The notes: generated by a model from the letters alone, not told the origin. 64,000 nucleotides of DNA from Auanema rhodensis (GCA_964057225.1 OZ059894.1:10230001-10294000), one strand, 5' to 3'; numbered from the stretch's first letter, positions 2,353 through 53,900 are shown. Program-made: numbers and translations.

Positions 2353-3587
2353 GGACAAAGAAACGTGCCGAGAGAAATACTAAAGGGGAATGTGAATTAC
2401 AAGAAAAAAAGAGGAATAATAGAAACGTATTACAGCGTAACAAGTAATGAAATAGTTATATATGTATATGAAAATAATAAAATTTATTAAGAAAGAATGA
2501 TATAGGGTGAGAGAGATCAATAGAGAGAAAGAGTCATATGCAGATCAGAGGAGATATCGAAGAAGAGCGTATCCAGGGAAACGATTGGTCTGTTTCAACA
2601 TGCATATACATACATATATGTACATAATATAAGTTACTTTGTAATTAAAAAGTCAAAAAAGGCGAAGAAAAGTGATGAAAATCTTGGTTGAAACTAACGG
2701 TTCGTCAGGCTGTTGCTGGAAGACGAAAGATGATGAAGTCAAATGTGGTAGACATGTCGTTCGAGGACAACCAATGCAACATTCATCACGGCAAACACCA
2801 AAAATCGGAGATCATTTACGTTTCAGGAAATTTACGGATGGCTTTCTCAATTCATTTCTTCATGTTTGCTTCTAACTCCTGACTGCTTTTTCTTTTCTTC
2901 TATGTCATAGTTCTGGAAGGAAATCTAGGTGCAGATTCCAATGCTCGATGAATATCCTTATTGTTCTCATAGAATATGCTGTAAGAACATTATGACCCAA
3001 GGTGAGTAAGAAGTAAACTGAAAAGGAGGCAAAGATCCTGTCGTCGATTGGAAAGCAATAGCAGCAACAGCAGTAGTAGTAGCACTAGTACTAGAATCAT
3101 CAGCACAGCAGCAGCAGCAGCCAATTGTTACCAGAGGGCTTAACTGCAGAAAAAGTAAGAACTCGAAAATGAGCAGTATCACCCGATAAAATTAAATTTT
3201 TTTTTGCATCTCTCCAATTTTTCTCAGCACAATTGAAGATTGTGAGATTAAATGTTTGTTGTTGTATAATTAAGTAAACAATGATAAAAACAAATTTTTA
3301 TTTGTCTATATATATAGTTAAATATATATATATATATATAGTTAGATATACACATATATATATAAAAATTGAAATAAATGTATGAGCAATTGAACGTTAA
3401 CAAGGATAACCATGATCTAGAATAACTGCTTTTCATAGTTTCTCTCTTTCTTCTTCCTTCCACTTACGAATAACTAAACGGAAAAGAAGGAAGAAGAAAA
3501 GAAAACAATATGTATATTAACTATATGATATATAGTTAATTTACACAAATGTTCTTAAATTTTATACACAAACGACAAGTACAATCG

Positions 3588-3600
3588 AAGGCACCCTGAG
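3588..3600 (-). promoter_or_regulatory. Overlapping lin-4/miR-125 (CTCAGGG) and miR-124 (GTGCCTT) 7mer seed matches in putative gar-3 3' UTR
   Basis: Minus strand reads CTCAGGGTGCCTT. It lies between the gar-3 stop (4437) and the first canonical AATAAA I could find (3297-3302). Confidence 0.45.
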
Positions 3601-3637
3601 CAGTGTGCATTCACCATTAAAACCGAGGCAAAAGAGA

Positions 3638-3678
<41 letters not shown>

Positions 3679-7829: not shown

Positions 7830-10524
7830 TAAATCTGGCCTAAAAAATTCAAATAAAAATAATATAATTAACATTTAAAAAATATAATTTAAAATATCTA
7901 CAGTTGTCATTCTATCAAAATGAGCATAAAACATCGTATAAACAGGATTATATAAGCTAAGATTGATAAGATTTCACAGAAATTGGCACAACCGCTCCTT
8001 AACGACAATACGTTAAAAATGAAAGTGTGGGGGGGGAGGAGGTTAGTTTACGTAAAATTTCACGTGAAAATGGGCACGAAAGAAGTTTGAGTCATGCCTG
8101 AGAAATTTAAAAATATTTATATTTAGCGTTCAATTATAGAATAACGAAAATATTTTGTAAAACATGAAGAGAAATAGAAAAGAAGAGAAGTTAGAAAATA
8201 ATGAAGAAAGAAAGAGAGAAAGAGAGAGAAAAAGAGAGAGAGAGATTGAGAGAATATTAACTTTTCTTCTTAGTTACTCTTTCTACTTCTAACCTCTCTC
8301 TCTCTCTCTCTCTCTCTCTGTTTCTTTCTTATTTTATCCTCCATCATCTTTTCTTTTATCATCTCCAAATCCCTTTACCCTTATTATTCCATATATTTTT
8401 CTTCTTATTATACATGTTTCTATTACTTTTACACAAGATCTTTTCAATAATACAGATAAATTTTGAAAAATTAAAATATTTTTTGTTTTATAAAACGAAA
8501 AATGAACTAAATACATACTGTGATATATGAAATATGCTTCAATAAATTTCAAAATTCAGCTGTTATTTTCTTTTAAAAATTTTTGTTTCTTTTGAAAATC
8601 GGAAAAGATTTAATATTTTTATAAAATAAAAATAAATGAAATGTGAATGTACTTCACAGACCATTTTTGTCGATTTTTTTGGTCGTGAAGCTATTTCTGG
8701 TAAGCTTAATGTCCACTTAGATGCTAGTTGAAGGGCCAGTCAGTCAATCAAAACCATCTATAGCATTGAGGAACAAGAAAATTGTGGATTTCACGTAAAA
8801 AGAATAGAAAGTAAGTAAAGAAGGAGCAGTTGGATAGCCCTAGTGAGGTGGTCTCATAAATTTTCCGGATGAGAGAACAGAAAAAATCATGTTCCGGTAG
8901 ATTGTCTTCGTTTGTAGGTTCTGTTGATGTTGTCCAGCATGTGAGACACATTATAAAATGAAGTTCCCGGTTTGAAAAATCATCAAAAATCATCAAAAAT
9001 TATTAAAAATGGTCCAAATATTGAACTTTTTCTTTAAATTTTGTAAAAATATTTCAAAAAAGGTTAAACATATTCACATGTTTTAAGGTATGTTCAACTT
9101 TGCAAATATGTTCTAACGAACTTTGTCGTTCTAACAAATCAAGCTGCAGAGAGCCAGGGTTTCAAGCTGGTGTACTGCAGTTGTAAGTTCTAAGTTGGAA
9201 AAGCCAAACTCGTAAATTCATCATGATGACATAAGCACGTGTGGCATTGTAGTTGTATTCGCAAATGAATGTGTATGATAGTTAGTTTGAAAGATTTCTA
9301 TTGAATAAGCTTATATTTCATCTGACTTGTCGGAACATCAAAGTTAAAGAATAGAAGTGAAGCAAGAAAGACATGTGGTTTGAGTTGGATGATGATGACG
9401 ATGATGAGTGAATATATGATGAATGATAGGTAATAGTGAATAAGCAGATGAATAAAGATGATGGGTTCACATATCAAAGAAGATTTAAAGATATTTGAAA
9501 AGTCAAAGAAATAAAGAGAAAATCAGATGAAGAGATGAATGTGAGTCAATGTAGTATGAAAGAAGAAGAAGAAGAAGAACAAACTCATACGATTGCAAGT
9601 CATTCAAAGATAAAATTGTTCATTTTCTTGAGAAAAAATACATTTCATTGTAAATAAGTTGAAGAAAAAAAAATTTTTTTCGTGTTCTGCAAGAAAAAAA
9701 AAAGAAAAAAGCTATAAAGATCTAGAATTGGGCTTTATGCTATGACTGATGTACATGCCTAATAGAATGACCGTTAGATGACCTGAGACAAGCTTCTTGT
9801 AAGATGTGCTGCACATGTCAAAGACATGCTTGTGACACTGTTAATACCAGTTTATGAGAGTTTAAGCATTTCAAAACCTAAAATGCTTAAAGCAAACGAA
9901 GTGTGTATGATCTTAAGATTGAAAACAGATTTCAAAATAACGTAGGACTGCTTGGGGTTGAACTTCATCAGGTATGAAAAGCATGAACTATGAAGTTGGA
10001 GGGCAATTGTGCACACCGAGAAAATCAGAGAAATGATCTTGAGCATGCTCATCAAAGCTGGTTTTTCGGAAGAAAAGGTTAATTGTGCTAAGTGAAATTC
10101 AGTAGTTTTCCTGCTCAGAATAAATGAATAAGTGCTGCAACTAAATAACATTCTCCTCCGAGAAGTGCAAGCTTCCAGAAAGAGCACAAAACTGATGAAT
10201 AAGCTGGGTAGAAAGTGGGAGAAGGTGATGGCTGTGAATCGACGACGAAAGGCAGATAGAAAGGGAGAGAGAGAGAGAGAATGAGAAGGAGAAGGAGAGA
10301 AAGAGAGAGACCGATCGAGCATGACAACAAGCTCACAACGCATCTTAAGACATTTGAAGGCTTTTAAGGTCTGAAACCCAAAGTAGTAGGAGTCTCATAC
10401 TTCCTATAATACGATCTTCTTCTTCTTCAAAAAAAAAAAAGAAATTAGAATAGTATAGATTATTGATTTTTAATTATAATATATACTATCATATGTATAG
10501 TAAGCAGTTATACTGAAATAACAG

Positions 10525-31500: not shown

Positions 31501-34126
31501 TCAAGCAACACCTAAACTTTTTTTCATCTCCTAGTTGGATTGGTGTCATAGAGAGAAAGAAATAAAGAGAGAGAGAGGGAGAAAGAGAGATAGAGAGAGA
31601 TCGCATCTTCTGAACACAAGCAGCAACCTGTATTGACATTTTAACTTCTATTCTTCAAGTTTCTCAAAGAACTTCAATTTCTTCCGCTATAAGTCAGCCG
31701 CTACCCCCATCTCTCCCTCTCTCTCTCTCTCTATCTTTCTTACTTACTTCTTTTTTCTCACCCACCTTACTTAGCGCATGTTCTGAAAACTAATGCCATT
31801 TTCATTCTGTAGGAACTAGAACCATCTTCTTAATCCAATTTCGATTTTCAAAAATAATTTCAATCGCACAGAACATTTTCTAACTCGACCATCTGTCCTG
31901 TCTGATTATCGCAATTTATGGTCTTCTTCTTCTTCTTCTTCTTCTATGTCTTATGATACAATCTACATCTTCTATATAGTTTCTAGACCAAGATGATGAA
32001 AACCATTTATATCAATCAATATTCATGATTTGCCATATAAAGTATTCGTTCCAATTTCTTGTTGTCTTATCCACTCTCATCACGTCATCAATATCTACCC
32101 AGCAATCTGTCCAATGCCTATGAACGAACCATTATAGCTGAATATCTCTCCGTATATCATTACCTAGTTTGTATTCAGAAATCTTAAATTTTTGTAGTTT
32201 TTCAGTATTTTATACTCTTTAAAAGGCTTCACAATACATTCTATTATTGATTTATAGATTTCAATCAAATTATCTGTATTATATCTCAATCATATCGATT
32301 CTATTTGCTTTTTTTGGTCAAACATTTCCGACTTAAAGGAGGAGAAGTAGAATGACGAAGAGGAAGTCAATTGTCTTCTCGCTTCACCCCTACGATGATG
32401 TTCTTCTATCTGTTCGTTGTATGCCATTCTCTTCTCCTATTTCCCAAGCTAAACATCAGTTCTCTAGATGTGAAATGTCTTGTTTCATCTAACATTCAAT
32501 ATCCGTAACAATTCACTCAATTGACTTGTTTTCTTGTAGTTAAAAAGGCACCACGAAAGCTATTTTCTCACTCCCTATATGTCTAAGAAGAGAAGTCATT
32601 TTGCCAGCTATCTGCAACTGTTTGATTTTCGTATTTGAATTTTTCTGTCAATAATCGAAAATCTGCGAATGCATCGAGAATCAGTTCCTTTCCTTTTCAT
32701 TTCTCTCACTAATATACATATAGTGAATATCAAATCTATGTAGAAAAAAACATGTTTTTCGTTATAATTGAGTAAATCCTTATAATATAGTTAAGCAGAC
32801 ATCTTCTGGCTTCTTTCTTTTTCCAAGCATTTTATCATTAAATCATTACATATCTTAAATTAATCTTCACCACATTGCTTTTTACTTAAGGAATAACTTT
32901 GGAATATCTTCTTCTATTTTTCATTTTTCCTCTCAAACATCTCTCCTCACATCGTTTTGTCCTCAAATTATTTACCTGAAGCATCATCAGAGTGCTTTGA
33001 TCCATGAATTTACTTCTCATCTAATTTACCAAATAATATACTCAATACTCCTCTTTCCAGTAAAATTTCTAGTTTTTATGTTTTACAAGTCATTTTTCGC
33101 CAAAATCCAAACTCTATTTATAATTTACATATTGTTTTCTTATAAAATACTCAAATGTGAGCCATTTTTCTGGTTTTTTTCACGTTAAATCTTTATTTCC
33201 CTTCTTCATATACGTTAATACGCTATTCTTATATGACGTCATTAACATACAGAATCATTTTCAATTTTTATTTCTACGAAGCGGTTGCATTTTTGTATAT
33301 TTCTTACCAAAATCAATTTTTGTTGTTTTCTTTTTCTTTTTTTTTATAGAAAGATTCATTCATTCTATCTCGATTTCTTCTTTTTCATGATCGTCAACAT
33401 GAACAACTAGATACAAAACTTCTTTTATTTTATTTTCTACAGTTATGTTATAACTTGTATCTTATTAAACTGAAACTATAATACTATATATATAATATAT
33501 ATTATATAAACTTCAAGCTATCATTCATTTTGTATTCTTAATATACAAGATCTGGTTAGAAAAGCAATCGCACAGCACAAGCTAACCGTACCTGTCTCAG
33601 TAACTATAAAACATATATCAGTATATATACATAAACAAACATAAACTTCATAAAAATCATTGTGACTATTGTTGCTCAGTTGTTGTCTATCTTTAACTAT
33701 ATTTCTCACTATAAAGCTTATATATCAAACATAATACTTGCTGAGCTCATACCAATAGCATTTTCTTTTTTCTTTTTTTTTTTGACAAGCATAAGCAATT
33801 TTCAAAATAAAACGACATGACAATGCTGAGGTAAAAACAAAATTTAAACTTATATTTGTTTTATATGAATACATTTTATAAATATATGTATATGTATATG
33901 TTTTATATAGTTAATATGACCTTCGTAAATGACCTAAACTAGATAGTAACTAGTTAACTAGCTTGCAATAGCTCTCATTTCATTTGTGTTTATAAGTAAA
34001 TCTCTATAATAACTAACAATAGTTCCACTTTTCCATATTTATTACATATATATGTTTATAAGAGAATACCAGTAAAAAAAATGATTTAGATTAACACCTT
34101 TGATGGGTGTTTCATTCAATTTCAAT

Positions 34127-36082: not shown

Positions 36083-38467
36083 TTAGAATTCACGGTCAGG
36101 GAAAAGAGCTGGAGCAATCATAGACCAGCCATACAAGGCTAAACAAAGCCAAGAAGAAACAATCTTAACCCAAACAGAAGCCATGTTACTGTTCAAGTGA
36201 CTGAGATCGTTATCAGGTCTGTAAAAGGCTCGATGACTAACAAACTTTATATAAAATAACTCACTTGTACCAACTTGTTAATGTCATCATGACATACAAA
36301 GACGCCAATCCGAACATGAAATGGAAGAAAGAGTATGAATAAGCTACTCCGTCAGCTTCATTATCCCAAGTCTTGGTATTGCCAGTTTCAGCATCATCTG
36401 TAAGATTAAATTGTGATCAAAAACGAGAATTTAAGACGGAATTCTCAACGTGCAACAAAACGGACAGATTTCATGCAACACAAAAGAGTAAAACGAATCC
36501 CCCATTTACAGACTATCTACTAAAGGTGAAACAAATGGGAAACTACGTCATACCCTGGATAATCGCATCTCTGGACCCACTAAGTTGAATGCTTTCATCT
36601 CCTCCGGTAATTTTTCCAAGAGAGGTGTTAGAAGAATTTCTGATTGAAGCGTAAAGCAGACAAGCAAACCACAAGATCAAAGAGATAATAGATTGAGCAG
36701 GTAGAGGTGTACCGTATCCCTGAAAAGAAACAATCAACTCGAAACTTTCAAACAGTATACTTACGTGTTCTCCCTTGTCGTCAACTTTTGAAGTATTCGT
36801 GAACAAGCTGATGAGAGATGGATTACACTCCTTGTCTGGAAAGTACATAGTTTCGAGAGCAATAATTGCAACTAATTTACCTGGGTTGTTGACAAGGGCA
36901 GACCAAGTCAAATAAACAACATACATGCAAATGAAAGAGGACTGAAGAAGTCCAGAACGGGGCATTCTACAATTAAAAAACTGTAAGTAAGTAACTGATA
37001 GAAAGGACAAGTACCTCTCTTGAACAAATGGCATTACGGAAAGTACACTGACTCCAATGCATAAAAGCATATTGAAGGTAATAAAGAACTTTGGAAGTCC
37101 GCATGAGCCACCCTGCAACTCAGTTGATACAATGATAATATTACTATAGAATCTTACAGTAGTATAGATGATGTACATAAAGATTATGGCGATGAAGGAA
37201 CAGACAAAAGCTCCAAAGGAGAAAGACAATAGACCAGCAAAACACCAACGAGACTCAGTTTCTTCGTAACTAAACAATACAAATAAACAAAGGATATGTA
37301 ATGGCTGACCAACCTTTCAACCCATTTTTCAGCCAAACCGTGAGCAAAGTCAACGATTAGGATAAGCTGAATGAGAATGAACATGAAACCACCGAGTAAG
37401 CCAATCCACATCAGAGCTAAAATTCCAAATAAGTTGTGAAAAGTTATGATAATAAGCGGGTTTTAGCACCAAAACTGTGGGAAGGATTTGACACTCTTGG
37501 AAGCATATACAGCAGACTAAGAGTAACACTAATCCCTCTCTACGTTATCGCACCCTAATATTATACGTCAGCCACATATAGTGGAAGCCGTCCCTTGAAG
37601 GTGCCACGTAGAAGATTCGAACCCCGAACTATCAATGACAGACCGGAGTTCTACCCTTACACTATATGGCTGTCGACTTACGTGTTGCTAAATGATCACT
37701 GCTGATGAAGAAGAACGCGATAACCAATCCAATAAGCAACAAATATTTGAAAAACCTAGAAATAATATATTCTTATATCATATATAGAATAGTTAAATAC
37801 CAGAATCCATTTTGCATAGCCGACCGTCCATCTTTAGAAGATTTCACTCCAAGCATCATAACCATTAAAATGAAGAAAAATGAAGCCATTCCAGCACACA
37901 ATCTAAACCAATTTTTTAAAGTTTTTTAACAGAAAGTAATTTTGATAAAGATTCTTATATTTTACCTGTAAACGGCTTGGAATCCAGTAGCTTTTTCGCA
38001 AGTTATACCAGCAATATCACTCAATCCTTTGCAGAACCATTCATGCTGGAAAAGTAAGAATTACAAAACATTATAAAGAAAATAGAAAGATGCAACCAGT
38101 TCATTTTTTTCAAACTCGAAAATGAATTAAGTTACCATTGTGAAAAATGTTGAAAATTCAGAAAAAAATGAAAATAGTGAAGCTATTGCTTCACTGTTAT
38201 AATTCACTCAACACATACCTTCGCCATATATTCCTGAATTCCAGGAGCGAGCATTATACAGGCTACAACAGTACCCAAGAAGAGCATCAAAGCATACATG
38301 ATACGAGTTGTAGTAGAATTTCTTGTTGTGGGACAAGCAGCACAACATAATGAGCATGCTGCACTTCCGAAGCAACATGCTGTCTGAAAAAATATTAAAA
38401 AATTACTTAATTTAAGAAAACTGTAGATTACCGAAGCTCCACAAGGTAGAGCTAGGAGAGCACCCAT
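36083..38467 (-). CDS. SERINC: Serine incorporator (SERINC/TMS1/TDE family)
   Basis: Multi-exon. N-terminus [26 protein letters not shown]...STTTRIMYA; [55 protein letters not shown]; C-terminus [10 protein letters not shown]. Confidence 0.96.
37471..37474 (-). terminator. Oligo-T (TTTT) Pol III terminator right after the ACA box
   Basis: Minus strand ACAGTTTT. Confidence 0.55.
37473..37604 (-). ncRNA. Box H/ACA snoRNA guiding 18S pseudouridylation at positions equivalent to human U1625 (5' hairpin) and U1248 (3' hairpin; SNORA13/snR35-like)
   Basis: In SERINC intron 37417-37681. 3' hairpin: GAGGGAUU/AAUCCUUC and ACUCUU/AAGAGU stems, ACA at 37476-37478, 14 nt from the pocket; guides match AUUUGAC-U-C-AACAC. 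5' hairpin: GCACC/GGUGC base; guides match AUUAU-U-G-CCCUUGAA. The H box is imperfect (AUAACG). Confidence 0.88.
37602..37670 (-). promoter_or_regulatory. Degenerate tRNA(Asp-GTC)-like leader with Pol III A and B boxes upstream of the snoRNA
   Basis: Acceptor-like GCCATAT/ACGTGGC+A; A box TAGTGTAAGGG (37654-37664); CTGTCAT anticodon-loop-like; B box GGTTCGAATCT (37613-37623). Anticodon and T stems are decayed, so this is not a functional tRNA. Confidence 0.75.
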
Positions 38468-39060
38468 TCTAACAAGTTATGCTGAACAAGGATTATTTTT
38501 AAAAATAACATTAGCATAAATTATAACTAACGAAAACAATATGGAGATTTAATGTTTAAATTCAGGAATATTAAAAGAATGTTAAATTTGATAACATTGG
38601 ATTTGTGCTATGTACATAATGAAATCATTTAGATAACAGTGACCATCACACTTTTTCAAAACAATAGGACAGGGTGAGAGAACCATTGTTCTCGCTTACT
38701 ATAAAAATTAAAGCTTATAATATAAAAACAATGCTATTGATTCAAAATTAAACAAGCCCAACATGCTCACTATGCTTTTGCGTGTGACTGTGTTTCATAT
38801 TGATTCGGCTGCTTGTTGGATCGTGGCGGGACTAATATTACACAAAGTCATATGAGTGCCAGCCCCACCCCTCGTTTCCCTTTCGGTGTGAATCAAAACA
38901 TGAAATTGACTATGAAATGTGATTATATCTGTCGTAATATTTTTGATGAAGAAAATCCCGCCATTATATGCAACCTATAATACTATTGGTAGACTATTGA
39001 GACCCCTACCTCGAATATTAGAAATACCCACGTTACTAAAGTCTTACGAAATCAATTCAA

Positions 39061-39083
39061 TGAGTCAGCCAAAGTATATAAAG
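39061..39083 (+). promoter_or_regulatory. AP-1/ARE-like TGAGTCAGC next to a nematode-type TATA box (GTATATAAAG) upstream of sqst-1
   Basis: TGAGTCAGC at 39061-39069 and GTATATAAAG at 39074-39083, ~120 bp before the ATG, in the ~740-bp divergent SERINC/sqst-1 intergenic region. Confidence 0.5.
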
Positions 39084-39203
39084 CGGAGTCTTTCTGTTTC
39101 TTCCCTTCCAAGTGTCTGCTGATAATTCTTTGCCAATTTTTCTATTTTCTCATTTTATGTTTAGAATATTTCTATTCTTTACTTATTAAGTAAATTATAG
39201 ATA

Positions 39204-41553
39204 ATGGCGAAATCTGTATCTGTTAAATGGCAAATTGCCAATCAAACTCGCCGATTCACAGCTAAAGTAAGCTTAATTTCAATGAAATATTAAAAGTGAA
39301 TGAAAAACTCTTAGACTGAAACTGATGGAAATCTTTATCAAAATCTCATGTCTATAGCATGTAGCCTTGTCGATCGTTCCGATTTTGAACTTTACTGGAT
39401 TGGTTGGTGATATCACTTATATCATGCATGAATTAGATCCCCATATTCAGATGAAGATCAAGAGTCTATTGTTATTAAATCTGAAGCTGAACTTCAAGAG
39501 GCTATTAAGTTTTCTGATGGAAAGCTTTTACGTTTGACTTCTGACTCCACAACTACTACTACTCCACATTCCCCAATTGGGGCTGTTGCCGCAAAAGCCC
39601 CTACTGCTCCAGTTGCCCCATGTGTGCCTACGCAAACTATGGATCCTGCGCAAGCTACTGTAACTGCTGATTTCGTAATATTTACCAAAATTGACGTTTA
39701 GTTACCAAATGGCGAGCTCTTGAATGTTCCTCATCATGGCGTCTTGTGTGACCTCTGCAATCAACAAGTCGTAGGATGCCGCTTCAAATGTCTAATCTGT
39801 TTTGATTTCGATTTATGCTCGAAATGTCATGATTCCGGTTTGTTATAATTGGAAATCAATACGTGAAGATGAGTCTTACAGGTCATCATGTCGAACATGC
39901 CATGCTCCGTATCTATCATCCTCGCATCACTGTTGTACCATGGGGCGCTCGCATCCGAAAACGTACGTTTCTGACCGCAACGTTAAAGGCATTTGAGCAT
40001 ATTCTTTACAGGTTGTGGGCCTAATATTCACCATCGCGATCGTACACGCGAAAAATGGCAAAAACATTACAGTAACATCAAAGAAGTAGGAAATGCTGTA
40101 GCATCTGCTCTTACCAGTTTAGGTAAGCAGTAACTAGGTTGTGACAAATCGATATTATCGATATTTAGGTATTTCAACAACATATGAAGTCCGAAATCCT
40201 ACTCCTAATAATGAATCCACGACTCCAGGTAATATATGGAAACATGAAGCAGGAAAACATTTGGACATTATAGAAGCTCCTCCACAATGTGATGAGCGAA
40301 TTCTGAAGAAATCGAAAGAAATGACTTCTGAAACTGAAACTCCTATTGTTGGACAGTCCACTTTGTATGATATTATGAATCCTGATCAAAACGGAGTTAC
40401 ATTTGGTGTTACTCTTCAACCTGACCACCCACCAATCATTGAGGTTTTCGAAGGCAATCATGACGAAATTGTTTGTAACCTTCTCATGATTCAATCATAA
40501 CTGTCATCCTTTTCAGGAAAATGATGCTAGAACCACACTTATGGATGATGACTCACATTCTTATCAAACTGACAGTGATATAAGGTGCTAAATCCATTAT
40601 TGATTTGTTCATACAAGAATATTTACAGTGAATGGGACTGTGTTACTGACGAATCTAATCGTGGCTCTCCTCAGGAAAGAGCGGTTGCCACGGCACCATT
40701 ACTACCTGCTACTGAAAATGTTGATGCTGATCCATCCGCAAAAGTAAATTCAGTGAACTCTAAGCTGTAGAAACTTTATTTCTTTTAGGCTCGTGAAGAA
40801 GCTAAGAAAATAATAAATCTATTGGCTGCACAAAATGGCCTAAAACTTCAAAATCATAGTCCACAATGTGTAGCAATGAGACAACATCAACTAGTTAACC
40901 TCGCCAATGATAACTCAGCGCCTGCCCAACAAGATTCTTTATCTTCTAACGATTCTCATGTTTACCCTGTTTTGTCCCCTACAACAGAGCCCCTTATACA
41001 GGTTACTAGTATCCCAACTACTTCTACTCCTGACTCTAATTCTGAACTCGGTGGTATAAGCGCTCGTGTACTTAGTGCAAGTCGAGCATTAACTTCTGCA
41101 GTTCTTCAGCACACACAAATTCCTATTGAGTTTTTGAGAAATCCTCCAAAGACTACCAGAGCTTCGGAGACATCCCAAGTTCCTTCTGAAGCTTCGCAAA
41201 TTCCAACTCAAGCTACCCAAATTCCTCCTCTATCTTCCCAAATTCCTCCTCTATCATCTCAACTCCCTCCTCTATCATCCCAAATTCCTTCCCAAACATC
41301 CCAAATTCCTCCTCAAATATCCCAAGTTGCTCCACAGAATTCTCCGGCTTTCGCCAATCTTTCTCTCGCAGAACTAAATGCAGCAATATCTGCAGCACCA
41401 CGTGCCGAAAACACCGTAATGAACGATATGAGCTGCTTCGTTATGGAAACATTGGAAAGCATGGGATTTCTGAAAGAAGACATTATCAGAGCTTTTAATG
41501 CTGGTCACGTTGATGTTGTTGATTGCATCAATTATTTGACTAGAAGTTCTTAA
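39204..41553 (+). CDS. sqst-1: Sequestosome/p62-like autophagy receptor (PB1-ZZ-LIR-UBA)
   Basis: PB1: [39 protein letters not shown]: [49 protein letters not shown]-like DSDISEWDCV (W at 40633). C-terminal [35 protein letters not shown]. Could be a sqst-family paralog rather than the strict ortholog. Confidence 0.88.
41173..41340 (+). repeat. 21-bp (7-aa, SQIPPLS-like) coding tandem repeat, ~8 units
   Basis: [56 protein letters not shown]; tcccaaattcct core repeated. Confidence 0.9.
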
Positions 41554-42325
41554 ACAACAAAAAAAAAGACTGTAAATATCAATTCTGTATTTATAAAATA
41601 CCCCAAACTTGTATAAAACTAATTAATATTTTCATGTAGTATAGTTGTACAAAGAAAACATTCGTTTTTTAATTCTGTACTGTTGATAATAAATTATTTT
41701 ATTGATTTATTGATTTATATAAATCACACGTTGAATTAGCATATAAACTTTTTTTTTCACGCCAAGCACATCATTTTGCGTTCAAATGACGATGTGCATG
41801 GTTGGCAATTTTCGAAAGCAACAGATCAACGACTTTGAAAATAAGGGATTTACTTGATAAACTAAGGTCTAGATATGTATATCTAGTGGATTTGTATTTG
41901 TTTCTTATAAGAAACAATTCATAGGAAGAAGTATATCGATGAACTAACTATTTAAAAATTATAATTCGTCTCCTTTATTCATAATGATCATTTTAAAAAA
42001 AAGTAAAAATCGTTAAAATAAAAAATATTTTCGAAACTTTTCACTAATCATTGCATAGGATTTACATTTCTCGTAAAAGAGGGTTGAGTTTTTTCTGCAT
42101 TATTGATTGCTTTTATGTTGTCAAATATTTAAGAGGTCAAACAATCAAATATGAATATTCTACAGAATTTCAATTAATTTCAAAAAATGACTGATTGATA
42201 TTATATGTTTTATATATTATTATGAATGTCATTATCTATATTATCTAAATAATTTTACAGAATTTTGAAAAGTTTGGTGACATTCCAGAAAATCCTCAAA
42301 TATGGGAATAATTTACATGTTTAAC

Positions 42326-42352
42326 TACCGTAACCCCAAGTGAGCTACCGTA
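42326..42352 (+). promoter_or_regulatory. Tandem TACCGTA motifs (germline-promoter/LSL-1-type) upstream of the orphan gene
   Basis: TACCGTA at 42326-42332 and 42346-42352 (20-bp spacing), followed by splice-site-bounded non-coding segments leading to the ATG at 43062. Confidence 0.45.
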
Positions 42353-43061
42353 TACGATGAGAACGCCCCAGCCTTCAACGTGACCTAAGTATGTTTTATC
42401 TCATTTATTTCCTCATTGAAGTTTCTTCACACTCTCTTATATGTTCTCAGATTATGAGATTTAATTTTCTGTCTTTTCACAATGCATTTTACATTATTTT
42501 CTGTTCAATCTGTTTCCATGCATTTAAGGTTTTTTAGAGATTTATAACTTTTTAATATTATTATAATAAGACTAATAGTAGAACTTAATCTCAACCTGTT
42601 AATTAATTAATATTTTTATTGAAAGAGTAACAAAATCATATCATAATCGTATTAGTACATCCTACTTACCCTACAGCGTAATTTAAGGAATCAATTAAAC
42701 ATTTTTGGATCAGATGTAGGAGATCCCAATGGGAAAAATATGACAATAAGCCTGCTTGCCGTAAGCAATCAAAGCAAACCATGTTTGATTGTTACTGTAT
42801 GACACTTCTGGTTATGTCTGAGAATTGTGTAAGATCAATCGTCGTATGCGACACAAGATTGACCTCTCTGCTCAACCAAGATCAATATCATTCGAACCTT
42901 AACTCCTCCTCCAAAAAAGTTAAGCCCTCCTATATTTTCAAATATTATACAGATAATATACTGCCCATATATAGCCTTTAGATTCACTGCCTCTCTAATC
43001 TTTTATATGTCATTATATTTCTTCTTTCTTACTTACAATATTTTTCCATTTCAGTCTAACT

Positions 43062-45264
43062 ATGGGAGATCACAAATTTATTCCCAATAGATCATATAGA
43101 AGGGTTTACAGAGATCCTCAGAGAAATTTTGTACAGAAGGTTTGTCAGATAATAGAGCCGAATCGGTCTAACCAGAGCTTTTTCAGATATATGCAATGCC
43201 TGATCCCCATCTCTTCTTCAAGACCTACATCTCAGCTAAATCTGAATTAAAATTCTTCAGCATAGGTAAGTGAATTATAGCTTAACTGTTTTAGTCATAA
43301 TAAGTTATAGATGGTTGTAATGAAGATGAAATCACTTCTAGTGAAGGGATAAAGGAATGTGCTCGAGGCATGCCTATGAAAGGCCTCGCAATTCAGTTAA
43401 CACGACGTCACCCGGGAACTCGGGAGCAATGTCGCCAATTTTTTATTTCAATTATGCGGAGATTAGAAGGCGTTCTTGATCGAATACTAGAAGATACTAC
43501 ACCAGAAAATAACACACCAGAGCCAAATAAGCAAGCATTCATTTTACCAGAAACAACCGTACTTGAATTGAATATACCAACAATTCCTGAAACACTTAAA
43601 TTGGATGTCGTATATGAAACTGCTCTGCAAGAACAGCCAGGATATCAGGAAATTAGAGGAGAAGACACTGATCCAGGCTATACTGATGAAGAAGATAATG
43701 AAAACTTGAATGAATTGCCACTTGATAATAAAACTTCAACTCAAATTAATGATGTAAGAGCGGCAAGAAAAAAACGGACAAGTGATAAAGCGGTAAGAAT
43801 CGGAGAATATTCTGGAATGTTTAACTACTTTTTCTTTCTAGATCATAGCAAATCTGAATAAAACAAAATTCAAAATAAGACGTCCAGTTATGATGACGGT
43901 ATATCAGTTCTATGATTCAACTTTTATTCAAAAAGTATATTATAGAATGGGTATAGTCTACAAAGAGATTCTGAAGTTATAGATTCTTTCACTAAAGTTA
44001 TTAAACGTGTTCATTGTGATGATTGTGCTACTCATGTGGAGTTAGCGATGCTCCATATAGGTTAGTTAGAAATAATTTTAATTTTTTCCAAAAATCCAAT
44101 GATTCTTTTCGAATAAAAAAGGTTTTCTTTCTGGTTCAATATGATATCATACTTCCCGTTTCAGATGATACTCTAAGCTGTAGTGGATGCAATGAGGATC
44201 GACTGGGGTATCTTAACCCTGCACATGTTTTTCCTCGAGGAGGTTCAAAACGGAAGGAGAGAAAAGTTCCATATCTGCAACCTCAACGTAATACAACTTC
44301 AACTATTGTGGATCCAACACCTTCAGAAGCTATGATCAAGGAGCATTTATCTAACTATGGTGTTGAAAACTATACTGTATTGATGAGCCACACAGAAAAG
44401 AATACTACGGATCAGAAACCAAAAATCGTCATTGGCGAGCCTCTTCCACTAGAATACAATGCCTTTGAGTCTATGAAGCCAAAAGCGTGTAAATTCAGTC
44501 AAACCACATTTGTGATTCCAAATGTGCCTGAAGAGGCAGCCATTGAAGACCCTGTAATTGGAGAAAAATCTGAGCCTATTTCAAAAATTGTGGAAGAACC
44601 AGCCAGGGATTGTGCTTCTGAGATATTGAAGATGATAACCGAAAAGCCACTCCCTAAACAAGATCCACGTAATGGATTATGGAGCATCCTTCCATTTCTT
44701 TACAAATTCAAGAATTCTAAAAACGAAGCTTGTGGACATATGCGTATGAGCATGCTTACTGGAGATAACGTAATGGAAATAAAGAAATCTGACAGCACTG
44801 GAAGTTCTGGAACCATCTATATGGCTATTAACTATGAGACATACCCAGGATGCGACTTTGAGCCTACTCAGATAATCAAAAATAAGATTGTTAACTGCTT
44901 CAAACACGAAATGCATGAGTTTACTCCACGTAAACCTAAACGACAACGAAGTTGGTCTGATATGGGATCAACAACTTCTGGATCAATGAGTGGATTTAGT
45001 CGTTTCTCCAGAAAGAGAGATATTCAGCGTTCGCCAGAAATAGACTACAGAAGACGTCGTCTGTCACCAAACACACCAGCTTGGGAACATGCCCCATCCA
45101 ACCTTCCATCAGGCCTTCGTGTGGAAACTTCATCTGATTCTATTGCATCAGGAAATTTCGATCACACAACACCCATCAGACCGCCAATCGAGCATGACGG
45201 AGCAAGACAACCATCCCGCACCAAGCTCCGCATATCCAAAAGGATTGCCAAGCTTTTTAAATAA
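43062..45264 (+). CDS. Uncharacterised 636-aa protein with a CxxC-x16-CxxC motif and an Arg/Ser-rich C-terminus
   Basis: Six exons join in frame (43062-43139, 43187-43265, 43311-43792, 43842-43898, 43946-44060, 44165-45264; 1911 nt). No family recognised. Confidence 0.8.
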
Positions 45265-45783
45265 ATTTTCCGAGTTTGTTAATAATTTCGAAATTTGAAT
45301 AATATTATTTCTTATTTTCTCATATTCCTATATTTCATATTTATCCCTTTTCCATAGCACCAAACTTCAATACATGTGTAAAATAGTCATTGATAACTCA
45401 GGTAAACCAGATGTCATCTTGACACTTGTCATCTCATCTCTCAAACACTAAGCTTGAGTACAACAGACTAATATATTATATAATTTAAACCTCTTCCTCA
45501 TCTTCAATTCTGAAACTCTATTATTCTCTCATGTTATCATTTAGAAAGTTGAAAAATAAAGTAAAAACAAAAAGAAATATAATATATAGTATATAGCAAC
45601 AATAGTATAATATGAGATATTTTAGAGGAGCCTTATGAAAAGAAATCTAAAACATCTTTACTTAGTGAAAATAAATAAAATTATTTATTTTAATATTGTA
45701 ATTTATTGTTTATATCAAATGCAGATATAATATTAAAGCGTTATCCTATATGAGGTTCTATATGAATTTAGCTTTAGATATAT

Positions 45784-46863
45784 TCATGAAGCTACGGTTT
45801 CAGCTTTTCTTATCCATATAACCTTATGTCTTAAATCATCTAATATGAAATCTGGAATCATGTAGTCGTTCAAGCTTCTATTCGGTCCAACTTCATTCAA
45901 TTGACTATTACTTTCATAAACATCTTGATATGACCATATTGACATATGTCTGTAATTAATATTGTATTATTTTAATAAATAAATTAATAATACCGGCTTT
46001 TTCCATGATATGCAAACATGTAAAGCTTTGAAGCTTCAACTGTTTCAGGTGGATCATTAGAAAACTCTAAACTTCTTCTATCTGGAGTCACGTAAAGATA
46101 CCCTGTCTACACACCAGATATTCAAGATCAGATCAAGAACACAAGGAAATTGAACTCACAACTAAGGCCCAATGAGCGGTATGACCATTCTTCTTACATG
46201 GACTAAAGTTTCTATCACAATCATATGGTAATAACAATGCTTCTCCATCAGAAAGCTTTTTAACTAATTCAATTGGTGAAGGGAACTTATCTACATTACA
46301 AATAATTGCATTTGACCATACGTTTTGTGCTAGTTGAGACAACCAAGTAGCTAAATATAACTTCAATTTACATATGTATTGTAAGCAATTTAAAATTATT
46401 TTTAAATATTGAACTTCACACTCCACTCATTACATTTGAAACTTTTTGTTTTGTTTGAACGCTTGAATGATATTTCACGAACAGCTAATTGATAACCACA
46501 AAGTAAAATATTATTAACTTACTAACCAGAAAACATTTCTCCTTGTTTGGTTATGCGCATGTTCTTAGCTGTACTGAAAATATCATCCACCGTAATATTA
46601 TTTAATTCTAACAGTGTGCTAGTCATTGATAACGCTACTATTCCACATCTTAAATATTATAAAGATAAGATACTATATTCAAAACGTATAATTAGCTTAG
46701 CTTACGTTGGTCCGACTTGAGGCACATGAACAACACTTTTATAACAGTATTGGGCTCCACTTAAATGTGTTTCTTCTTCATTTTCGCATATTTTTGAATG
46801 GTATTGTAATATAGCTTCTATTTTATAGAAGAGGGAAGGTGGAAACTGCTCAACATTGTGCAT
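45784..46863 (-). CDS. ACTMAP: Actin maturation protease (ACTMAP/C19orf54, UPF0692)
   Basis: Spliced motifs VPQVGPTCGIVALSM (catalytic Cys region), TKQGEMFSA, LLLPYDCDRNFSPCKKNGHTAHWALV, FAYHGKSRHMSIWSYQDVYESNSQL. Confidence 0.9.
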
Positions 46864-49439
46864 ATTAGCTAATTTCTAGGCGAGGAGCACTTCAGTTGTG
46901 TAGTAATTGTCAGTGGGGCGTAATTTAGCTATATAGCTCGTTTTCTTCAAATGTTTCATTGATACTATTCCAAATTAAATTTAGGAAAAGTGATCTAAGA
47001 TGTAGACTTGTATCTAAAATTGATAAAAATAATGATAAAATTGTTTCTCGTTACACAACTGATAAACAGTGGTTTATAATGTTTTATTTTTAATTATATT
47101 TTTTCTAAAAATGAGCCAGAATCAAGAGGACAGGTACAGTACACCTCATGATTTTATTCTACCCTGTCCTTATCAGTATTAGTCTTATTTTTTAAAGAAA
47201 GAACACAGAGAGACAATTGAAATTTGCATTTAATTTTTGTTATTTCTCAATTACTCTCTGCTCCCCCCTCTTCACACACACACACACATTCACACACACA
47301 CACCCCTCCACACCCCTCTGTTTCCATCTCTTTCAAGATCAATTTGATATATAATATATTATTATTATTATTGTAAAATAATACTACGTCTTCTATTTAA
47401 AATATCAACTGTAATTAGAAGCAGAAATTTAATTAAAATCACACATCTTCTTGATCATAATTTTTGATTTTTGAAATCTATTCAGTATGTTGTATTAATA
47501 TGCAGAGTTGCCAGAGCTAATCGAAACTCGAAGTTGAAATTGCATCAGACAGGCAGACAGATACACATACATACACACATAAACATAATATTGATGAGTG
47601 ATAATATGTATTTTTTATCAGCTGTTGATTATTTTTCATCATCAACTGGAAAAAAAAAGTAAGAGGAAGTTAAACCATTATGCTATTGTTATGCACTGAT
47701 CAAAGGTCTCCTCCTGAATTGTTGTTGCAGTCTGTGGCCCATTTATTGCTAGATCAGCTGTCATAGACTACTACATTTGTATAGGGTGAATAGTGCATAA
47801 ATGTGTGGAAAATGAAATTATTTCAAAATCGTTGCTATGAGCGAATAGAAAAATTGCAAATATTATCTATTGACAAACAAATTCTTTTTTTTTTTATTTC
47901 AAAAATCATATTATGTTGATCAATGGTTCCAATAGACTCAATAGATTGAATATTTGTTAAGTACATACATGTATTTCTATGAACAATTGTGTAAATTTAT
48001 TTGAATATTTCTTTTATGAAAGGACAGAATAATTTGAAATAATTAAATGAAAATAATGTGTACGTGAACTATGTACATAGGATTGAGAATTCATAAAAAA
48101 AATTCACTCCCGAACCATGTTTCATAGTAGTATCTCCAGCTGAGCTTCTTCGGAACCCCAAAGCTCATTTAAGCTGTTGCTTTCAAACACTCGTGTTATT
48201 TGAAGTCAAATTCTAGGATATGTATAACCACTGTGAGCCATCTGCTTATCAGCTTGAACATCAGATGAATTGCTTACACGAACATCAGTTGAACGATGTT
48301 GGAAACTCGTTAGTGTAAAATCCGGCTTGCAGTTTCAACATGCTTCTTACATTATTGTCTGAGTTATGTTATAAAGACATTATATTTTCATCAAGTAATC
48401 CGCTTAGTAGATATTAAAGTGATGTTCCACTATATACTTCGTCATTGTACGTAACATAATTCACCTCTGAAAGTGCATTGAATTTGACGGGCTCTCCATA
48501 ACATCGAATGTAGGAAAAATAATCGATTATTAAAAGTTAAATTCCTTCAAAATAATGAATGAAAAATAATAAAAAAGAGTAAGCAATAGAACATATTATT
48601 CTAGAATTAATCTTTGTTTTGCACAAAAAATACTTTGGTAAATATTATTTTTTAAAATCAATTAATCGATCATTGATGTGCATTGATATCAACTTCTGCA
48701 AAATGATGTCAGCATATGGATTGGTCCTAGTCCCATATTTGAGGACAGAGCTCACTTGGTATGATGTTAATCTTTCCGAATTGTCCAAGCCGTGAACGTA
48801 CTAATAACGAACACGGGACTACTATATCGGATGATGTTGAACTATCGTGTGTGAACTATATTCACCGCCTTCGCTTTGCGCCGTATTTCTTATGGGTTTA
48901 CACTAGTTATAGTGTTGTCATTTATTAGCTAAATGTTCGTTAAACTTTCTATTACGTACCTCTCGGTTTAATATAGTTAAGAAGCCACTTTACAATACTT
49001 CAGATTAAATGAAAGCATACTGATCATCTCTCCCTCGAGGTGATAATAACATCTACTATTATCTGTACTATCTAGTTATCTTATTTTCTAATACTCTTAC
49101 GACAAAATATTTGAAAAATGTGAAATTTGAAATAGCTGTCGTTTCAAAGCAACATTGACATTGTTCCCCCATGTTTTAACTTCTCAATGTCATTCGTACC
49201 ATCCTTGCATAGTCCTCAAGTATATTTATCTTTGGCAAATCGAAACTTTCACTTTCTGTCTTTTACAAGAGGCATTTTAAGATACCTCTACCTGCATGAA
49301 TTGTTGGCATTCATAAACCAGTTATACGAATCGGATGATTGCCATCGTCTCGTGACATCAACTATTCTCTATAATTGCCCGGACATTATCATTAGTCAGA
49401 AAAACGTCAACATTGGTTTAATGATTCAAAGAGATTGTG

Positions 49440-50964
49440 AAAATAACTAAATTTTTATTGATATATAAGTTTTGCAACATAATCACACTGAACAGAATAC
49501 AATATGTTCGAATATGGATATTGTGTATAAAGTATCTAGCATGTCTAAGTAGAAAATTCTAGCGAGGCTATCTATAGTAAATAGAATCAAAAAACGACGA
49601 CTGCTCAGCCGAGTTCATAACGTTGAATAACAAATAAATATTCTAAAATTTTCAGCTGAACAGTCATGGCTAAAGAAAATAGCATGCAAAGTAGACAAAT
49701 GTAACAAAACTATTAAATATGAAAGGTCACTTTGCACCCTATACATAAAACATCCAAAAATGTAAAAAAAAAGAACAAAAGAAAAGGAATAAATATAGGA
49801 TGCCAGAGGATCCATTTGAAAGAATGAAGGAAATCTGATAGGCTATGAAAAACACTGGTACCTTATGGAAAATGAATTAAACACATAAGAGCGGGAGCAA
49901 CCCTACATGACAGTAACCGGGTATGGGATAGTTAACCATGGTTCTCAAGGTGGAATTCACAGAGTAACTAGCCGTGAGAGGGTTCAGCTTCCCGTTTCAA
50001 CGTAACAAATCTGGCAGAATTATTACTAATTGCTCATAATATGCAGATTATTAAAATGTTACCGGTGAGGAACCGAGTACAAGGCAGATAAAACTAAAAT
50101 AAATGAACAAAAAATGAGAATTATTAAGGCATGATAAAGGATACTTAGAGGTTTGGAAGCGTAGTCGCCCATCGGAGAAGCTTTGAAAAAAGCCCAGAGA
50201 AAAAGAAGAAAATAAATTAAGAAAAGAATAATAAGTTATGGAACTGAATCGCAGCAGAACTCCTTAGAATTCGAATAAGGATCTGTATGGATAAGCCTCA
50301 TTCTGCATCATACTGTACAATATAGCAGCGAAACAGTTAGGAAAGAAAGGGTATTCATAAAAATCTACAGATTGATATATCTACAAAGAGAAGGAAATCT
50401 TCTTAGAAGTCTAGTGAGGTAATTAAACCTGGGATTAATGATTAGAAATGCAAGACAAAACTAGAATATATACTTTTCGGTATGTTTGACAATACCGAAA
50501 AGCTCTCCAAGAAGGCACAGAGAAGAGGCACAACACATATCCCAGATGTATCAAACGAGTAAAAAAAAATAAAAAGGAATAACCAATATCTACATTGTTT
50601 ACAATGTAATATACTGAGTTGGTATTAAAATAAGCTATGCTGTTAAAGGAAAGGGAAGGGGGCGTTAAAAGAAAGAAAAGAAAAGAAAATGATGGTCTAG
50701 ATCGTATCTAGGCTTAAATATAGATAAACGAAACCGGCAAACCAAAAACTGCCTTAAACAACATTCACTATCAAGAGCCATGAACTGTTTTAAACAAAAC
50801 AGGATCAAGAGAGCAGATGTTGTTCCAAAGACTACTTTGAATAAACTCAAGAATTCCTTTAATGCACAAAAAAACATCTAGGCCAGACTTGAAATGGTTG
50901 TAAACCAGGTTGAAGTCTTAAAGAAGAAATTTTACATCAGTATTATTTAAAAACACTAACCCAA
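49440..50964 (-). promoter_or_regulatory. Putative ~1.5-kb ccch-1 3' UTR with AREs, miR-124 sites and stem-loops
   Basis: U-rich on -; first AATAAA seen at 49454-49459. UAUUUAUU at 49633-49640 and 49788-49795; miR-124 matches at 50081-50086, 50125-50131 and 50512-50518. Confidence 0.5.
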
Positions 50965-53900
50965 CTATTTTGCACTTAATTGGGCAAATACTGGTAAACG
51001 ACTTGGGGCTTCTTCAGCACCCCACTTATCATCAACTTTAAAAGCCATCAAGTCCGTCAGAAGAACAGAGATAGGTTCACTGAAATTATAATGATATGAA
51101 AAGGTAAAAAACTGTTGGGAGTTCTTAGTGGTATATCACCCTCGGAGAGATGAGAATACCGTGGTACCAGCCATTAATATCCGCTCACATATGAACGCCT
51201 TCAGCCAAAGCGCTGGAGAGCGCCAACACCTAGTGGGATTGAACCACTAAGATGTGAGCGATGGACTAACGTACTGCCACTACACCATAACAGACATGTT
51301 GGGTAATGAAAATGTTTACCACATATTTTAAAAGAGCATTGTTTTTTTTATTTACTAAACAATAAACATACGTCTGTTGATCATAAGTTGCTTGGAATCG
51401 CTGGGCTTGTCTACGAGATCCTCCTTGTGGTCCCATAAAACCATTAGCAAAGGGTGCAAGACCTAATAATAAACATTTATAAAACATGATATGAGCAGAT
51501 TTTCATGCATACCACATTCATCGTTATCGAGACCCGAAGAAAAGCTTCCATTAGGCGATTCAGAACCGCTATCATTGGAGCTTCCAGAGGAAGACTCACC
51601 AGCACTTCCATAGTTTGGAAGAGAAGCCATGCGGTGAAGGAATGAACTTTGCACTGAATATAGCTCATTTATGAAATATATAATATTCATGTCTTACAGT
51701 TCTGTACACTAGGTGTCATAGAGGAACCTCCAGGTCCACTAGTGCTTTTAGAGCTACCATTAGTAAACATATTCAAGCTTGATTGAGTAGATGTCGGTTG
51801 ATTCATGAGTTCCATTTCACTGAAAAAATAAAATATTTTGAAATAATGAAATTTATAATCCTACTTGTGAATAAAATGGCATCGTGGTCCATATGGACAA
51901 TAACCTGTCTGATGAAAAGATTGGCAAGCTTCTGTTTTATACTTTGGGTGACGTGGAATCTGTCTCTTCTCACATTCCCCATGAGCATACTGACAACTGA
52001 AAAGGAAACATTAAAAAATTTCGTCATACAAGCATCTTTGAAAATAAAAATTAATGCACAGCGGAACTAACCGTTCCCCATAATTACATCGACCATGTTC
52101 CATCCAACTACGGCATAATTCTGTCTTATACAGTTTTGGATTTTTCGGTGCAGGAGTATTACCACTGCTTGCATTACTGCTAACGGACATATTGTTATTT
52201 CCTGAAAAAAAGTATTTTACAAATAATTTTCATATAGAGGGAAATGTTGGAATGACAGTGCGGTCTAAATAATATGTCTTTTCATGTGGCATAATTACTA
52301 GTCAAACTAAATTTGATCGCACACAACTGAACAACTAGTGCATAACGCGGGACGGTGCCGTCTTTCAACTTACGGGTAGCAAAAATCTGTATAATGACAC
52401 AGGCGACAAGAAAAGTGAATTTTCAAGTGAAGAATTTTAGCACATTGAAATGAAAAAATCATTGAGAAATGTCATATGCGTTTGAAACCAAAAGATTCAT
52501 TAATTGGATGAAACCCAATTTCGCAAAATTGCAGAAGTCTGTCGACCAAGCTGACTAAAAATGCAATAGAGGAGCATCTCATTTCCACAAAGCTTAATCG
52601 AATAAACAACGCAACCATCATGACGCTTGCCATATATATATTGAGAAGCATAAATTCTCTAAAGACATGCTAATGTCTCAGCGTTGCGCTAGATTGCTAA
52701 CCAACTAAAGTTTAAGAAAAGTGCATAAGCGAATAAAACAATGAAATGTTTCTTTTGTTCAAAATAGATCAACAAAAGTACATAGAAAGTGGTCGTGGAC
52801 AAAATTTCGACATGAGAAAAAAAATGAAGACCTGAATTACTTGAAATGCAAGGAAACGTGCATTTATTGAAAAATATAGATTAGTTGAATATGAATATCA
52901 AGAGTCATTGATAACTAACCATTTATCGGCATCCCTGGAGCACCAAGAGGATTTCCGTTTTCGGAAGCTGGGGAAACAACACCGCCATACGGACGTCGGC
53001 TGTTTGGAGCCCTTAAAAGGAAAACGATAAAAAAGTTAGCATTACAAGACACGCATTTGTGATAGTCTACAATCACAATAGGCAAGAATCAAATAACAAA
53101 TAGAATACATAAAGGCAAACCTATTAGTCATTTGCTTGAATGGATATCCCGTGACTTGATTCAGTGAATTATTTGAAGGTGAAGACACTGCTGAGAATGG
53201 ATCCAGAAGAGAAGACAAGGCTTCCGTTGGCGTTGACTGATTAGAGTATACAGACTGAAAACAATTATTTTTATTTGTACAGTTTTTCAACCAACAAGAA
53301 AGAAGCCAATTATAAAAGAAACGAAGGAATATGACACCACTAATATATAAACAGGGCAGGCAAAAAGAAAAACAATTTGGAGATCAACGAGGCTTCTCTA
53401 CGACGAATAATCCTCTAAAGAAGTATACGTTGGTTATGACCAAAATATCTGCCATCATATCAAATAACAAGTAGATTAATGAAATCATGGAAATAACCAA
53501 TAGTCTACTTAATAGAATAGAATGAAATGATTATTTTAAAAAAAACAAGCAACTCTCAATCTGATGTCAAAAACTATGACATTATCTAAACAAGAGAAAA
53601 ATAAAAGGACTAATAGTGATTTCTAGCTTAGTTCAAGTCTTTTTATAAAAACGCAGTATTAGTCATAACGAATTCATAAACATAAGAGATGCATGAAGCA
53701 TTTAAAATATAAGGAATGTTGAATTTAATTGGCTAAATATGTTGCATACATATAACCCACAGCTCATTGGAGCTGAAATTGGAATATCAAGAAAAAATAA
53801 GTATTGAAGCTAAGGGCCATTCAGAAACACCTGGTAGTTCAAAGTGTAACAGGGTGATGGAATTCAACTTGTAGTCGGGAGGAGAAGAAAGACCAAAGCT

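Follow-up and report, generated by a model that had tools for sequence, protein, structure and literature searches.

Background

The best described counterparts of the loci reported here are the UM2 loci of Caenorhabditis elegans, where an upstream motif composed of a box A and a box B precedes a small nucleolar RNA (snoRNA). Both boxes are required, the start lies 9-13 bp upstream of box A, preceding the mature 5' end by ~70 bp, and the UM2 leader was found within the primary transcript at four loci, with termination at TTTT and no free leader fragment (Li et al. 2008, PMC2527325). Intronic UM2 RNAs occur at levels ~55-fold above those of the host mRNAs, with which they are uncorrelated, and are host-independent (He et al. 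2006, PMC1474057). Stutzman et al. (2020, PMC6950938) recorded 52 TFIIIC sites to which RNA polymerase III (Pol III) is bound at C. elegans snoRNA starts, and Pol III, TFIIIC and TBP at ~50 snoRNA genes; Pol III and TFIIIC occupancy of snoRNA genes is also found in Sin et al. (2017, PMC5364375), citing Ikegami and Lieb 2013. In the present study, two cassettes of comparable layout are described from a 64 kb stretch of Auanema rhodensis DNA (GCA_964057225.1 OZ059894.1:10230001-10294000; hereafter the window, 33.5% GC). One is located in an intron of a SERINC-like gene and the other in an intron of a tandem CCCH zinc-finger gene, both cassettes and both host introns being on the minus strand. 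Each cassette is probably an independent Pol III type-2 unit nested in sense orientation within an intron transcribed by RNA polymerase II (Pol II).

The resemblance to UM2 loci, e.g. CeN37 and CeN55, which share a D1046.1 intron (Deng et al. 2006 and Li et al. 2008, PMC2527325), extends to the box spacing of ~30 bp, the leader of ~70 nt, the often intronic location and the oligo-T end. A tRNA origin was likewise proposed for the UM2 leader, which Li et al. (2008, PMC2527325) regarded as a remnant of tRNA-snoRNA dicistrons. Apart from the species, the cassettes differ in that their polymerase, start site and precursor are predicted by analogy with C. elegans, and in that cassette 1 would start only 5-9 nt past the 5' splice site of its host. 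The layout was already described for C. elegans in 2006-2008, which makes the cassettes ordinary as a kind. The original prediction saw in them possible intermediates between tRNA-snoRNA dicistrons and bare box A/box B promoters; it was right about the UM2-type boxes and the T run, but the idea is not new (PMC2527325) and the tRNA fold it invoked was overstated (see below). What is new here is the comparison of filled and empty SERINC introns across seven relatives, together with a direct repeat flanking cassette 2.

Other known systems share part of this organization. Plant tRNA-snoRNA dicistrons (Kruszka et al. 2003, cited in both PMC2527325 and PMC1474057) likewise rely on a tRNA-type internal promoter and a single Pol III transcript. 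They are processed by RNase Z and release a functional tRNA, whereas the cassettes have no cloverleaf and snoRNA 1 itself would include the RNase Z site. In yeast, a Pol III snoRNA with a leader carrying A and B boxes differs from the cassettes by being of the box C/D type, present at a single locus and not intronic. This RNA is snR52. Its promoter resides in the leader, which is lost in maturation (PMC2527325), as is proposed for the present cassettes. Intronic Pol III units also occur in the C. elegans mir-1829 family (Sakhawala et al. 2025, PMC12487709), with boxes A and B ~35-87 bp upstream and a T5 run directly after the product; that product is a Dicer-dependent microRNA (miRNA) hairpin, whereas the cassette product is a snoRNA. 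Finally, mammalian snoRNA retrogenes (Weber 2006, PMC1687206; PMC1802619) are copies in new introns flanked by target-site duplications, a feature with which the 9/10 direct repeat of cassette 2 may be compared. They originate through the L1 machinery, display poly(A) tails and are expressed by their new host, whereas the promoter of the cassettes would travel along.

Architecture of the two cassettes

Cassette 1 is nested in intron 1 of this study, in the SERINC-like gene (37417..37681, 265 nt, phase 1, GTAAGT..TTTTAG), and cassette 2 in intron 2, the last coding intron of the CCCH gene (51080..51371, 292 nt, GTATGT..TTTCAG). The same order was observed in both, in host sense: the 5' splice site, a leader of ~70 nt, an RNA ending in ACA, a G, a T run and the remainder of the intron. 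In cassette 2, an additional 66 nt of AT-rich intron separate the 5' splice site from the leader. Two cassettes of identical layout in host sense, each comprising box A, box B, an RNA of H/ACA type and an end of ACAG plus T4 or T6, had been predicted, and this was borne out at both loci.

Box A was located at 37654..37664 in cassette 1 (TAGTGTAAGGG) and at 51277..51287 in cassette 2 (TGGTGTAGTGG); the corresponding boxes B were found 30 nt (37614..37623, GGTTCGAATC) and 31 nt (51236..51245, GGTTCAATCC) past box A. These boxes came from a regular-expression scan (box A, gap of 24-42 nt, box B) of both strands of the window, which returned exactly two pairs, one per cassette. Block shuffles gave a mean of 0.3 sites, and two sites were reached in 4.5% of them.

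The 3' ends are ACAG+T4 at 37478..37471 in cassette 1 and ACAG+T6 at 51115..51106 in cassette 2. The predicted Pol III terminators are the T4 run at 37471..37474, starting 1 nt past ACA, and the T6 run at 51106..51111, directly preceded by ACAG. They are the first TTTT encountered after box A, at 190 nt (cassette 1) and 176 nt (cassette 2), without any internal T4; only 17-20% of stretches of such length are free of TTTT in this AT-rich background. The cassettes were also richer in GC than the rest of their introns (45% vs 31% for cassette 1, 47.5% vs 21% for cassette 2).

Between the start of box A and the 5' end of the RNA, as set by the Rfam alignments described below, lie 58 nt in cassette 1 and 62 nt in cassette 2. 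Adding 9-13 nt, the predicted start would be 67-75 nt away from the RNA, which fits the ~70 nt of C. elegans. The reading as UM2-type snoRNA units was thus upheld, with boxes A and B in the lead, gaps of 30 and 31 nt and T runs directly after ACAG.

The two predicted small nucleolar RNAs

At gathering thresholds, Rfam returned nothing in the whole window; at an E-value threshold, ceN80 was the only real match. It corresponded to RNA 1 (37473..37606, minus strand, 134 nt, ACA at 37478..37476), which aligned with the entire ceN80 model (RF01653, 1-131 of 131) at 63.1 bits and E 2.7e-12. Both pocket regions were near-identical to the ceN80 consensus while the stems varied by paired changes. The minimum-energy fold displayed the two-hairpin shape, ACA+3 was present and the structure followed the ceN80 consensus. 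By this comparison RNA 1 is a counterpart and relative of Caenorhabditis ceN80, though not a member of the family by the Rfam cut-off. An exact-pattern scan of metagenome contigs for the ceN80 3' pocket yielded 43 matches, all of them attributable to chance.

RNA 2 (51110..51225, minus strand, ~115 nt) has its H box, ATATTA, at 51180..51175 and its ACA at 51115..51113. No Rfam match was obtained for it when 551 nt were searched. Searched alone (125 nt) against ceN36-1 (RF01627), a family of nematode H/ACA snoRNAs, it gave a weak full-length match on the same strand (51225..51110, 17.7 bits, E 0.28). This match is weak evidence, yet it agrees with a model of RNA 2 built by hand beforehand, in which P1 (CGCUC/GAGCG) is followed by a pocket, an upper stem of 8 bp, the H box AUAUUA, a second hairpin and ACA+3. 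The alignment agreed with the hand model in its borders, its P1, its hinge and the two strands of the 5' pocket. In the hand model, the top of the pocket is 15 nt from the H box and 14 nt from the ACA box, where the generic rule is 14-16 nt. Compared with ceN36-1, the 5' hairpin, which measures only ~42 nt, falls 15 nt short at its apex, and the resemblance in the 3' hairpin is poor. RNA 2 would be a divergent H/ACA RNA of reduced length whose 5' pocket resembles that of ceN36-1, and it is likely to be a working H/ACA guide.

The occurrence of an H/ACA RNA in both introns was sustained by Rfam in part. RNA 1 was ceN80-like and RNA 2 weakly ceN36-1-like, both over the full length, on the same strand and with conserved pocket strands, but both remained below the curated cut-offs.

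The leaders

Leader 1 (37607..37677) and leader 2 (51226..51300), both on the minus strand, were delimited by the C. elegans rule, i.e. a start 9-13 bp upstream of box A. The predicted Pol III starts are at 37673-37677 (intron +5 to +9) and 51296-51300. When the stems were anchored on the boxes in canonical register, leader 1 displayed 6/7 pairs in the acceptor stem, 3/4 in the D stem, 0/5 in the anticodon stem and 4/5 in the T stem; the corresponding values for leader 2 were 4/7, 4/4, 2/5 and 5/5. The acceptor-like stem announced for both leaders was thus present in leader 1, but in leader 2 it reached 7/7 only if its 5' strand was moved 8 nt upstream (51302..51296), partly before the predicted start. 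Box B of cassette 2 lies within the perfect 5-bp T arm, which extends to 8 bp through pairing with the would-be acceptor 3' strand. In the same leader 22 nt separate the D and T arms, the overall tRNA length being kept.

The broader claim that the leaders keep much of a tRNA fold did not survive. At default settings, ARAGORN detected no tRNA in the window, and the Rfam tRNA models gave no match with the ~100-nt leaders alone even at E<=10. When its thresholds were reduced to 70%, ARAGORN placed a cloverleaf on each leader and also one inside each snoRNA; because false tRNAs were also called within the snoRNAs, its leader calls carry no meaning. Leader 1 folded alone formed a single long hairpin (D 3' strand, anticodon region and T 5' strand, z -2.65) and no cloverleaf. 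As for the 'Asp-GTC-like' label, it goes back to the 7-nt loop CTGTCAT alone, the stem of which is absent; the nematode loci examined contained no real nematode tRNA for an isotype comparison.

The leaders are not tRNAs but would be decayed tRNA gene relics that survive as promoters. The D and T modules, identical with the promoter boxes, are what persists, so the tRNA-likeness left is what TFIIIC reads. Leaders 1 and 2 shared 42 identical columns, mostly within and around both boxes, and no further copy of either cassette or leader was found in the window. Judged by this alignment, the two leaders do not appear to be copies of one repeat.

Complementarity between leader and snoRNA was observed in both cassettes. 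In cassette 1, 12/13 nt of the leader (37668..37656) are complementary to 37587..37575, at the apex of the RNA 1 5' hairpin. In cassette 2, two exact runs, one of 10 nt and one of 9 nt, lie side by side in the leader (51260..51243) and face 51123-51132 and 51182-51190, i.e. the 3' strands of both RNA 2 hairpins. Shuffles matched the longest exact runs in 1.8% (cassette 1) and 0.15% (cassette 2) of cases. The two cassettes are unlike in this geometry, and the duplex energy of leader 2 is unspecific (-51.3 kcal/mol with snoRNA 1 vs -49.4 with its own), only the exact-run statistic standing out. If the units behaved like mobile elements (see below), these complementarities of 9-13 nt might be a feature of precursor folding or a trace of the origin of the unit.

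Host introns and their splicing

The borders of intron 1 were set by homology. The upstream exon ends with SSDHLAT and the downstream exon continues with LMWIGLLGG, the codon split by the junction being C|CT (Pro); the counterpart of these flanks in the Ancylostoma SERINC is ENLSTPLMWFGM, and the Mesorhabditis SERINC protein agrees too. The relatives of this SERINC indicate a clade V rhabditid. Host homology searches were performed one exon at a time, joined protein models being left out.

Intron 2 is spliced, as RNA contigs from four runs of one study joined 51079 to 51372. The same contigs also skipped seven further introns of the CCCH gene, all of them GT..AG (44, 50, 44, 45, 75, 718 and 109 nt). 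Both host introns had been singled out as over-long; their sizes of 265 and 292 nt and their locations were correct, but 292 nt is not the longest in the CCCH gene. The intron of 718 nt (52201-52918) is by far its longest, and it contained no box A/box B pair and no Rfam match. Contigs retaining intron 2 from exon to exon had a depth of 5-8, compared with 65-230 for the mRNA and 3.3-4.6 for contigs lying within the 718-nt intron. These intron 2-containing contigs are pre-mRNA and not a separate small RNA.

A search for orthologs of the CCCH gene with its 43-aa zinc-finger exon against 1.84 billion proteins returned one irrelevant protein. No CCCH exon was found among the nematode loci retrieved for the SERINC comparison.

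Proposed mode of expression and alternatives

Following C. elegans work, from which polymerase, start, precursor and processing are transposed, TFIIIC would bind box A and box B within the transcribed leader of ~70 nt, and Pol III would start ~10 nt upstream of box A. With a start predicted at intron +5 to +9, TFIIIB would sit on the upstream exon in the case of cassette 1. A single transcript would comprise the leader and the box H/ACA guide RNA, and Pol III would terminate in the T run. Since this run begins one base past ACA, little 3' trimming would be needed to reach ACA+3. The H/ACA proteins would be assembled on both hairpins, and the leader would be lost via a cut, 5'-to-3' trimming to the edge of the ribonucleoprotein (RNP), or both. 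The acceptor 3' strand of cassette 1 (37609..37603) shares four bases with the beginning of RNA 1 (37606 in the ceN80 alignment). RNase Z, cutting canonically after the discriminator (37602), would therefore intrude into the basal stem of the snoRNA. This speaks in favour of a cut within the leader, after which exonucleases would trim up to the edge of the RNP.

Several points weigh against this reading. C. elegans has hundreds of box A/box B sites devoid of Pol III, the extra-TFIIIC sites (PMC6950938). The four runs mentioned above, which are of mRNA type, show spliced mRNA and low-level unspliced pre-mRNA only, such libraries being uninformative on Pol III products. The 63.1 bits of RNA 1 are below the ceN80 gathering score of 80, and its hinge, AUAACG, departs from the H box ANANNA. 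Likewise, the 17.7 bits of RNA 2 are below the gathering score of 48 for ceN36-1; its H/ACA shape is ~3 kcal above the minimum and its fold is not better than that of shuffles (z +0.25).

The figures for RNA 2, along with its lack of a significant Rfam match and its 5' hairpin of only ~42 nt, are those expected if cassette 2 had no working H/ACA guide and contained instead another Pol III RNA or a decaying copy. Against this stand the H box, the ACA+3 and the 14-15 nt rule, observed on both hairpins, and the full-length ceN36-1 alignment with the same borders and, for the 5' hairpin, with P1 and the pocket strands identical; furthermore, the boxes and the terminator of cassette 2 are intact. 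We consider the absence of a working guide somewhat unlikely.

The same RNA could also have two sources, the Pol III unit and the host intron after splicing, as the original prediction proposed. This would be physically possible given the sense orientation and the real splicing, and exonucleolytic trimming would strip the leader from either precursor. In C. elegans, however, UM2 signals are ~55-fold above those of the host mRNA and uncorrelated with them (PMC1474057), so any contribution of the host would be minor; a dual supply is regarded as unlikely.

If, on the other hand, both were splicing-dependent intronic snoRNAs, they would be transcribed by Pol II and trimmed from the lariat, and the leaders would be dead tRNA pseudogenes or transcription-independent TFIIIC sites. 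Both RNAs are indeed in host sense within truly spliced introns, unspliced pre-mRNA containing the cassette exists, and the C. elegans sites with boxes A and B but no Pol III provide a precedent. Yet the two independent loci share the spacing between box A and the RNA, the ACAG-T-run end and the absence of internal T4, and this exact layout is promoter-active and host-independent in C. elegans (PMC2527325, PMC1474057). Moreover, a dead pseudogene is not expected to keep both boxes while the anticodon stem is lost. Splicing-dependent production by Pol II alone is improbable.

True plant-type tRNA-snoRNA dicistrons, in which RNase Z (with RNase P) would release the RNA from a tRNA or tRNA-like leader, are highly improbable: the acceptor-like 6/7 stem and 4/5 T arm of leader 1 could stack as a minihelix and the T arm of leader 2 is perfect, but neither leader was accepted by tRNA detectors, the anticodon stems are gone, the RNase Z cut after 37602 would remove part of the snoRNA 1 basal stem, the good acceptor pairing of cassette 2 is partly upstream of the predicted start, and the experiments of Li et al. 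(PMC2527325) yielded no leader fragment in free form.

The SERINC intron across relatives and the possible mobility of the units

An intron at the same position and in the same phase of the SERINC gene was found in seven relatives, and none of the seven contained a cassette. Its length was 39 nt in Mesorhabditis spiculigera, 41 nt in Logan contig L002, 42 nt in JGI contig L050, 48 nt in Caenorhabditis sp. 36, 101 nt in Ancylostoma ceylanicum, 339 nt in A. duodenale, where it includes a palindromic insert, and 524 nt, AT-rich, in Logan contig L049. In the four compact relatives, at 39-48 nt, it is thus empty. Screening of the SERINC loci by Rfam, nhmmer, blastn and box-B scans revealed no ceN80-like or cassette-2-like RNA in A. 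ceylanicum, A. duodenale, Caenorhabditis sp. 36, M. spiculigera and four Logan/JGI contigs. The ceN80 family being common to Caenorhabditis and the intron being filled in 0/7 relatives, the gene of cassette 1 entered the SERINC intron in the lineage of the window. From this comparison, cassette 1 is clearly a lineage-specific insertion ~6-11 nt past the splice donor, in an otherwise short and conserved intron.

Two side observations were made at the Ancylostoma loci. The SERINC intron of A. duodenale (L003, 11374-11709) contains a GC-rich insert of ~300 nt with long terminal inverted repeats, resembling a miniature inverted-repeat transposable element, which is not found in A. ceylanicum (L001). 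The latter displays, at ~3350-3670 on the minus strand, a box B-like sequence (GGTTCAATTC) with a T6 run ~190 nt later, which may be a further Pol III small-RNA unit.

Cassette 2 is bordered by a 10-nt direct repeat of 9/10 identity that looks like a target-site duplication. Its upstream copy (ACATTTTCAT, 51306..51315, minus strand) is 18 nt upstream of box A and its downstream copy (ACCTTTTCAT, 51096..51105, minus strand) adjoins the T6 run. The chance of such a repeat was estimated at ~1e-3 with the 3' copy fixed, while any 9/10 repeat within the 30-nt flanks occurred in 8% of shuffles. Without the 210 bp between the repeats, intron 2 would measure 82 nt. The flanks of cassette 1 contained no target-site duplication. 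They include a 10-nt, 90% inverted repeat, located in the last bases of the upstream exon (37683-37692) and directly past T4 (37462-37471), which could serve to loop out the cassette from the pre-mRNA, unless it is due to chance.

The comparison of these introns and flanks suggests that whole units, composed of leader, snoRNA and T run, may move. A more tentative idea, to which we attach rather little likelihood, is that the units, the promoter of which is inside the transcript, behave like short interspersed nuclear elements (SINEs), RNA- or DNA-made copies being functional wherever they landed and snoRNA genes colonising short introns. Cassette 2 is a 200-bp island of 47.5% GC in an intron of 21% GC.

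Other observations in the window

Sub-threshold Rfam matches to plant miRNAs at 8196-8339 and 31550-31756, on both strands, were rejected as hairpins of (GA)n...(TC)n simple repeats, which are not miRNA genes. The longest open reading frame of the window (44023-45264, plus strand, 413 aa) lacks Pfam domains, and a search of 5.8 billion proteins at E<=1e-10 gave no relative; it could be fast-evolving or not a gene.

Significance

The two cassettes leave the known mechanism unchanged. They would extend the UM2 mode of snoRNA expression, by Pol III and with a transcribed tRNA-derived promoter leader, to another rhabditid lineage. The comparison of filled and empty introns makes it testable whether snoRNA genes with an internal promoter move between introns as units, and such mobility would bear on the poor conservation of snoRNA positions between distant nematodes.

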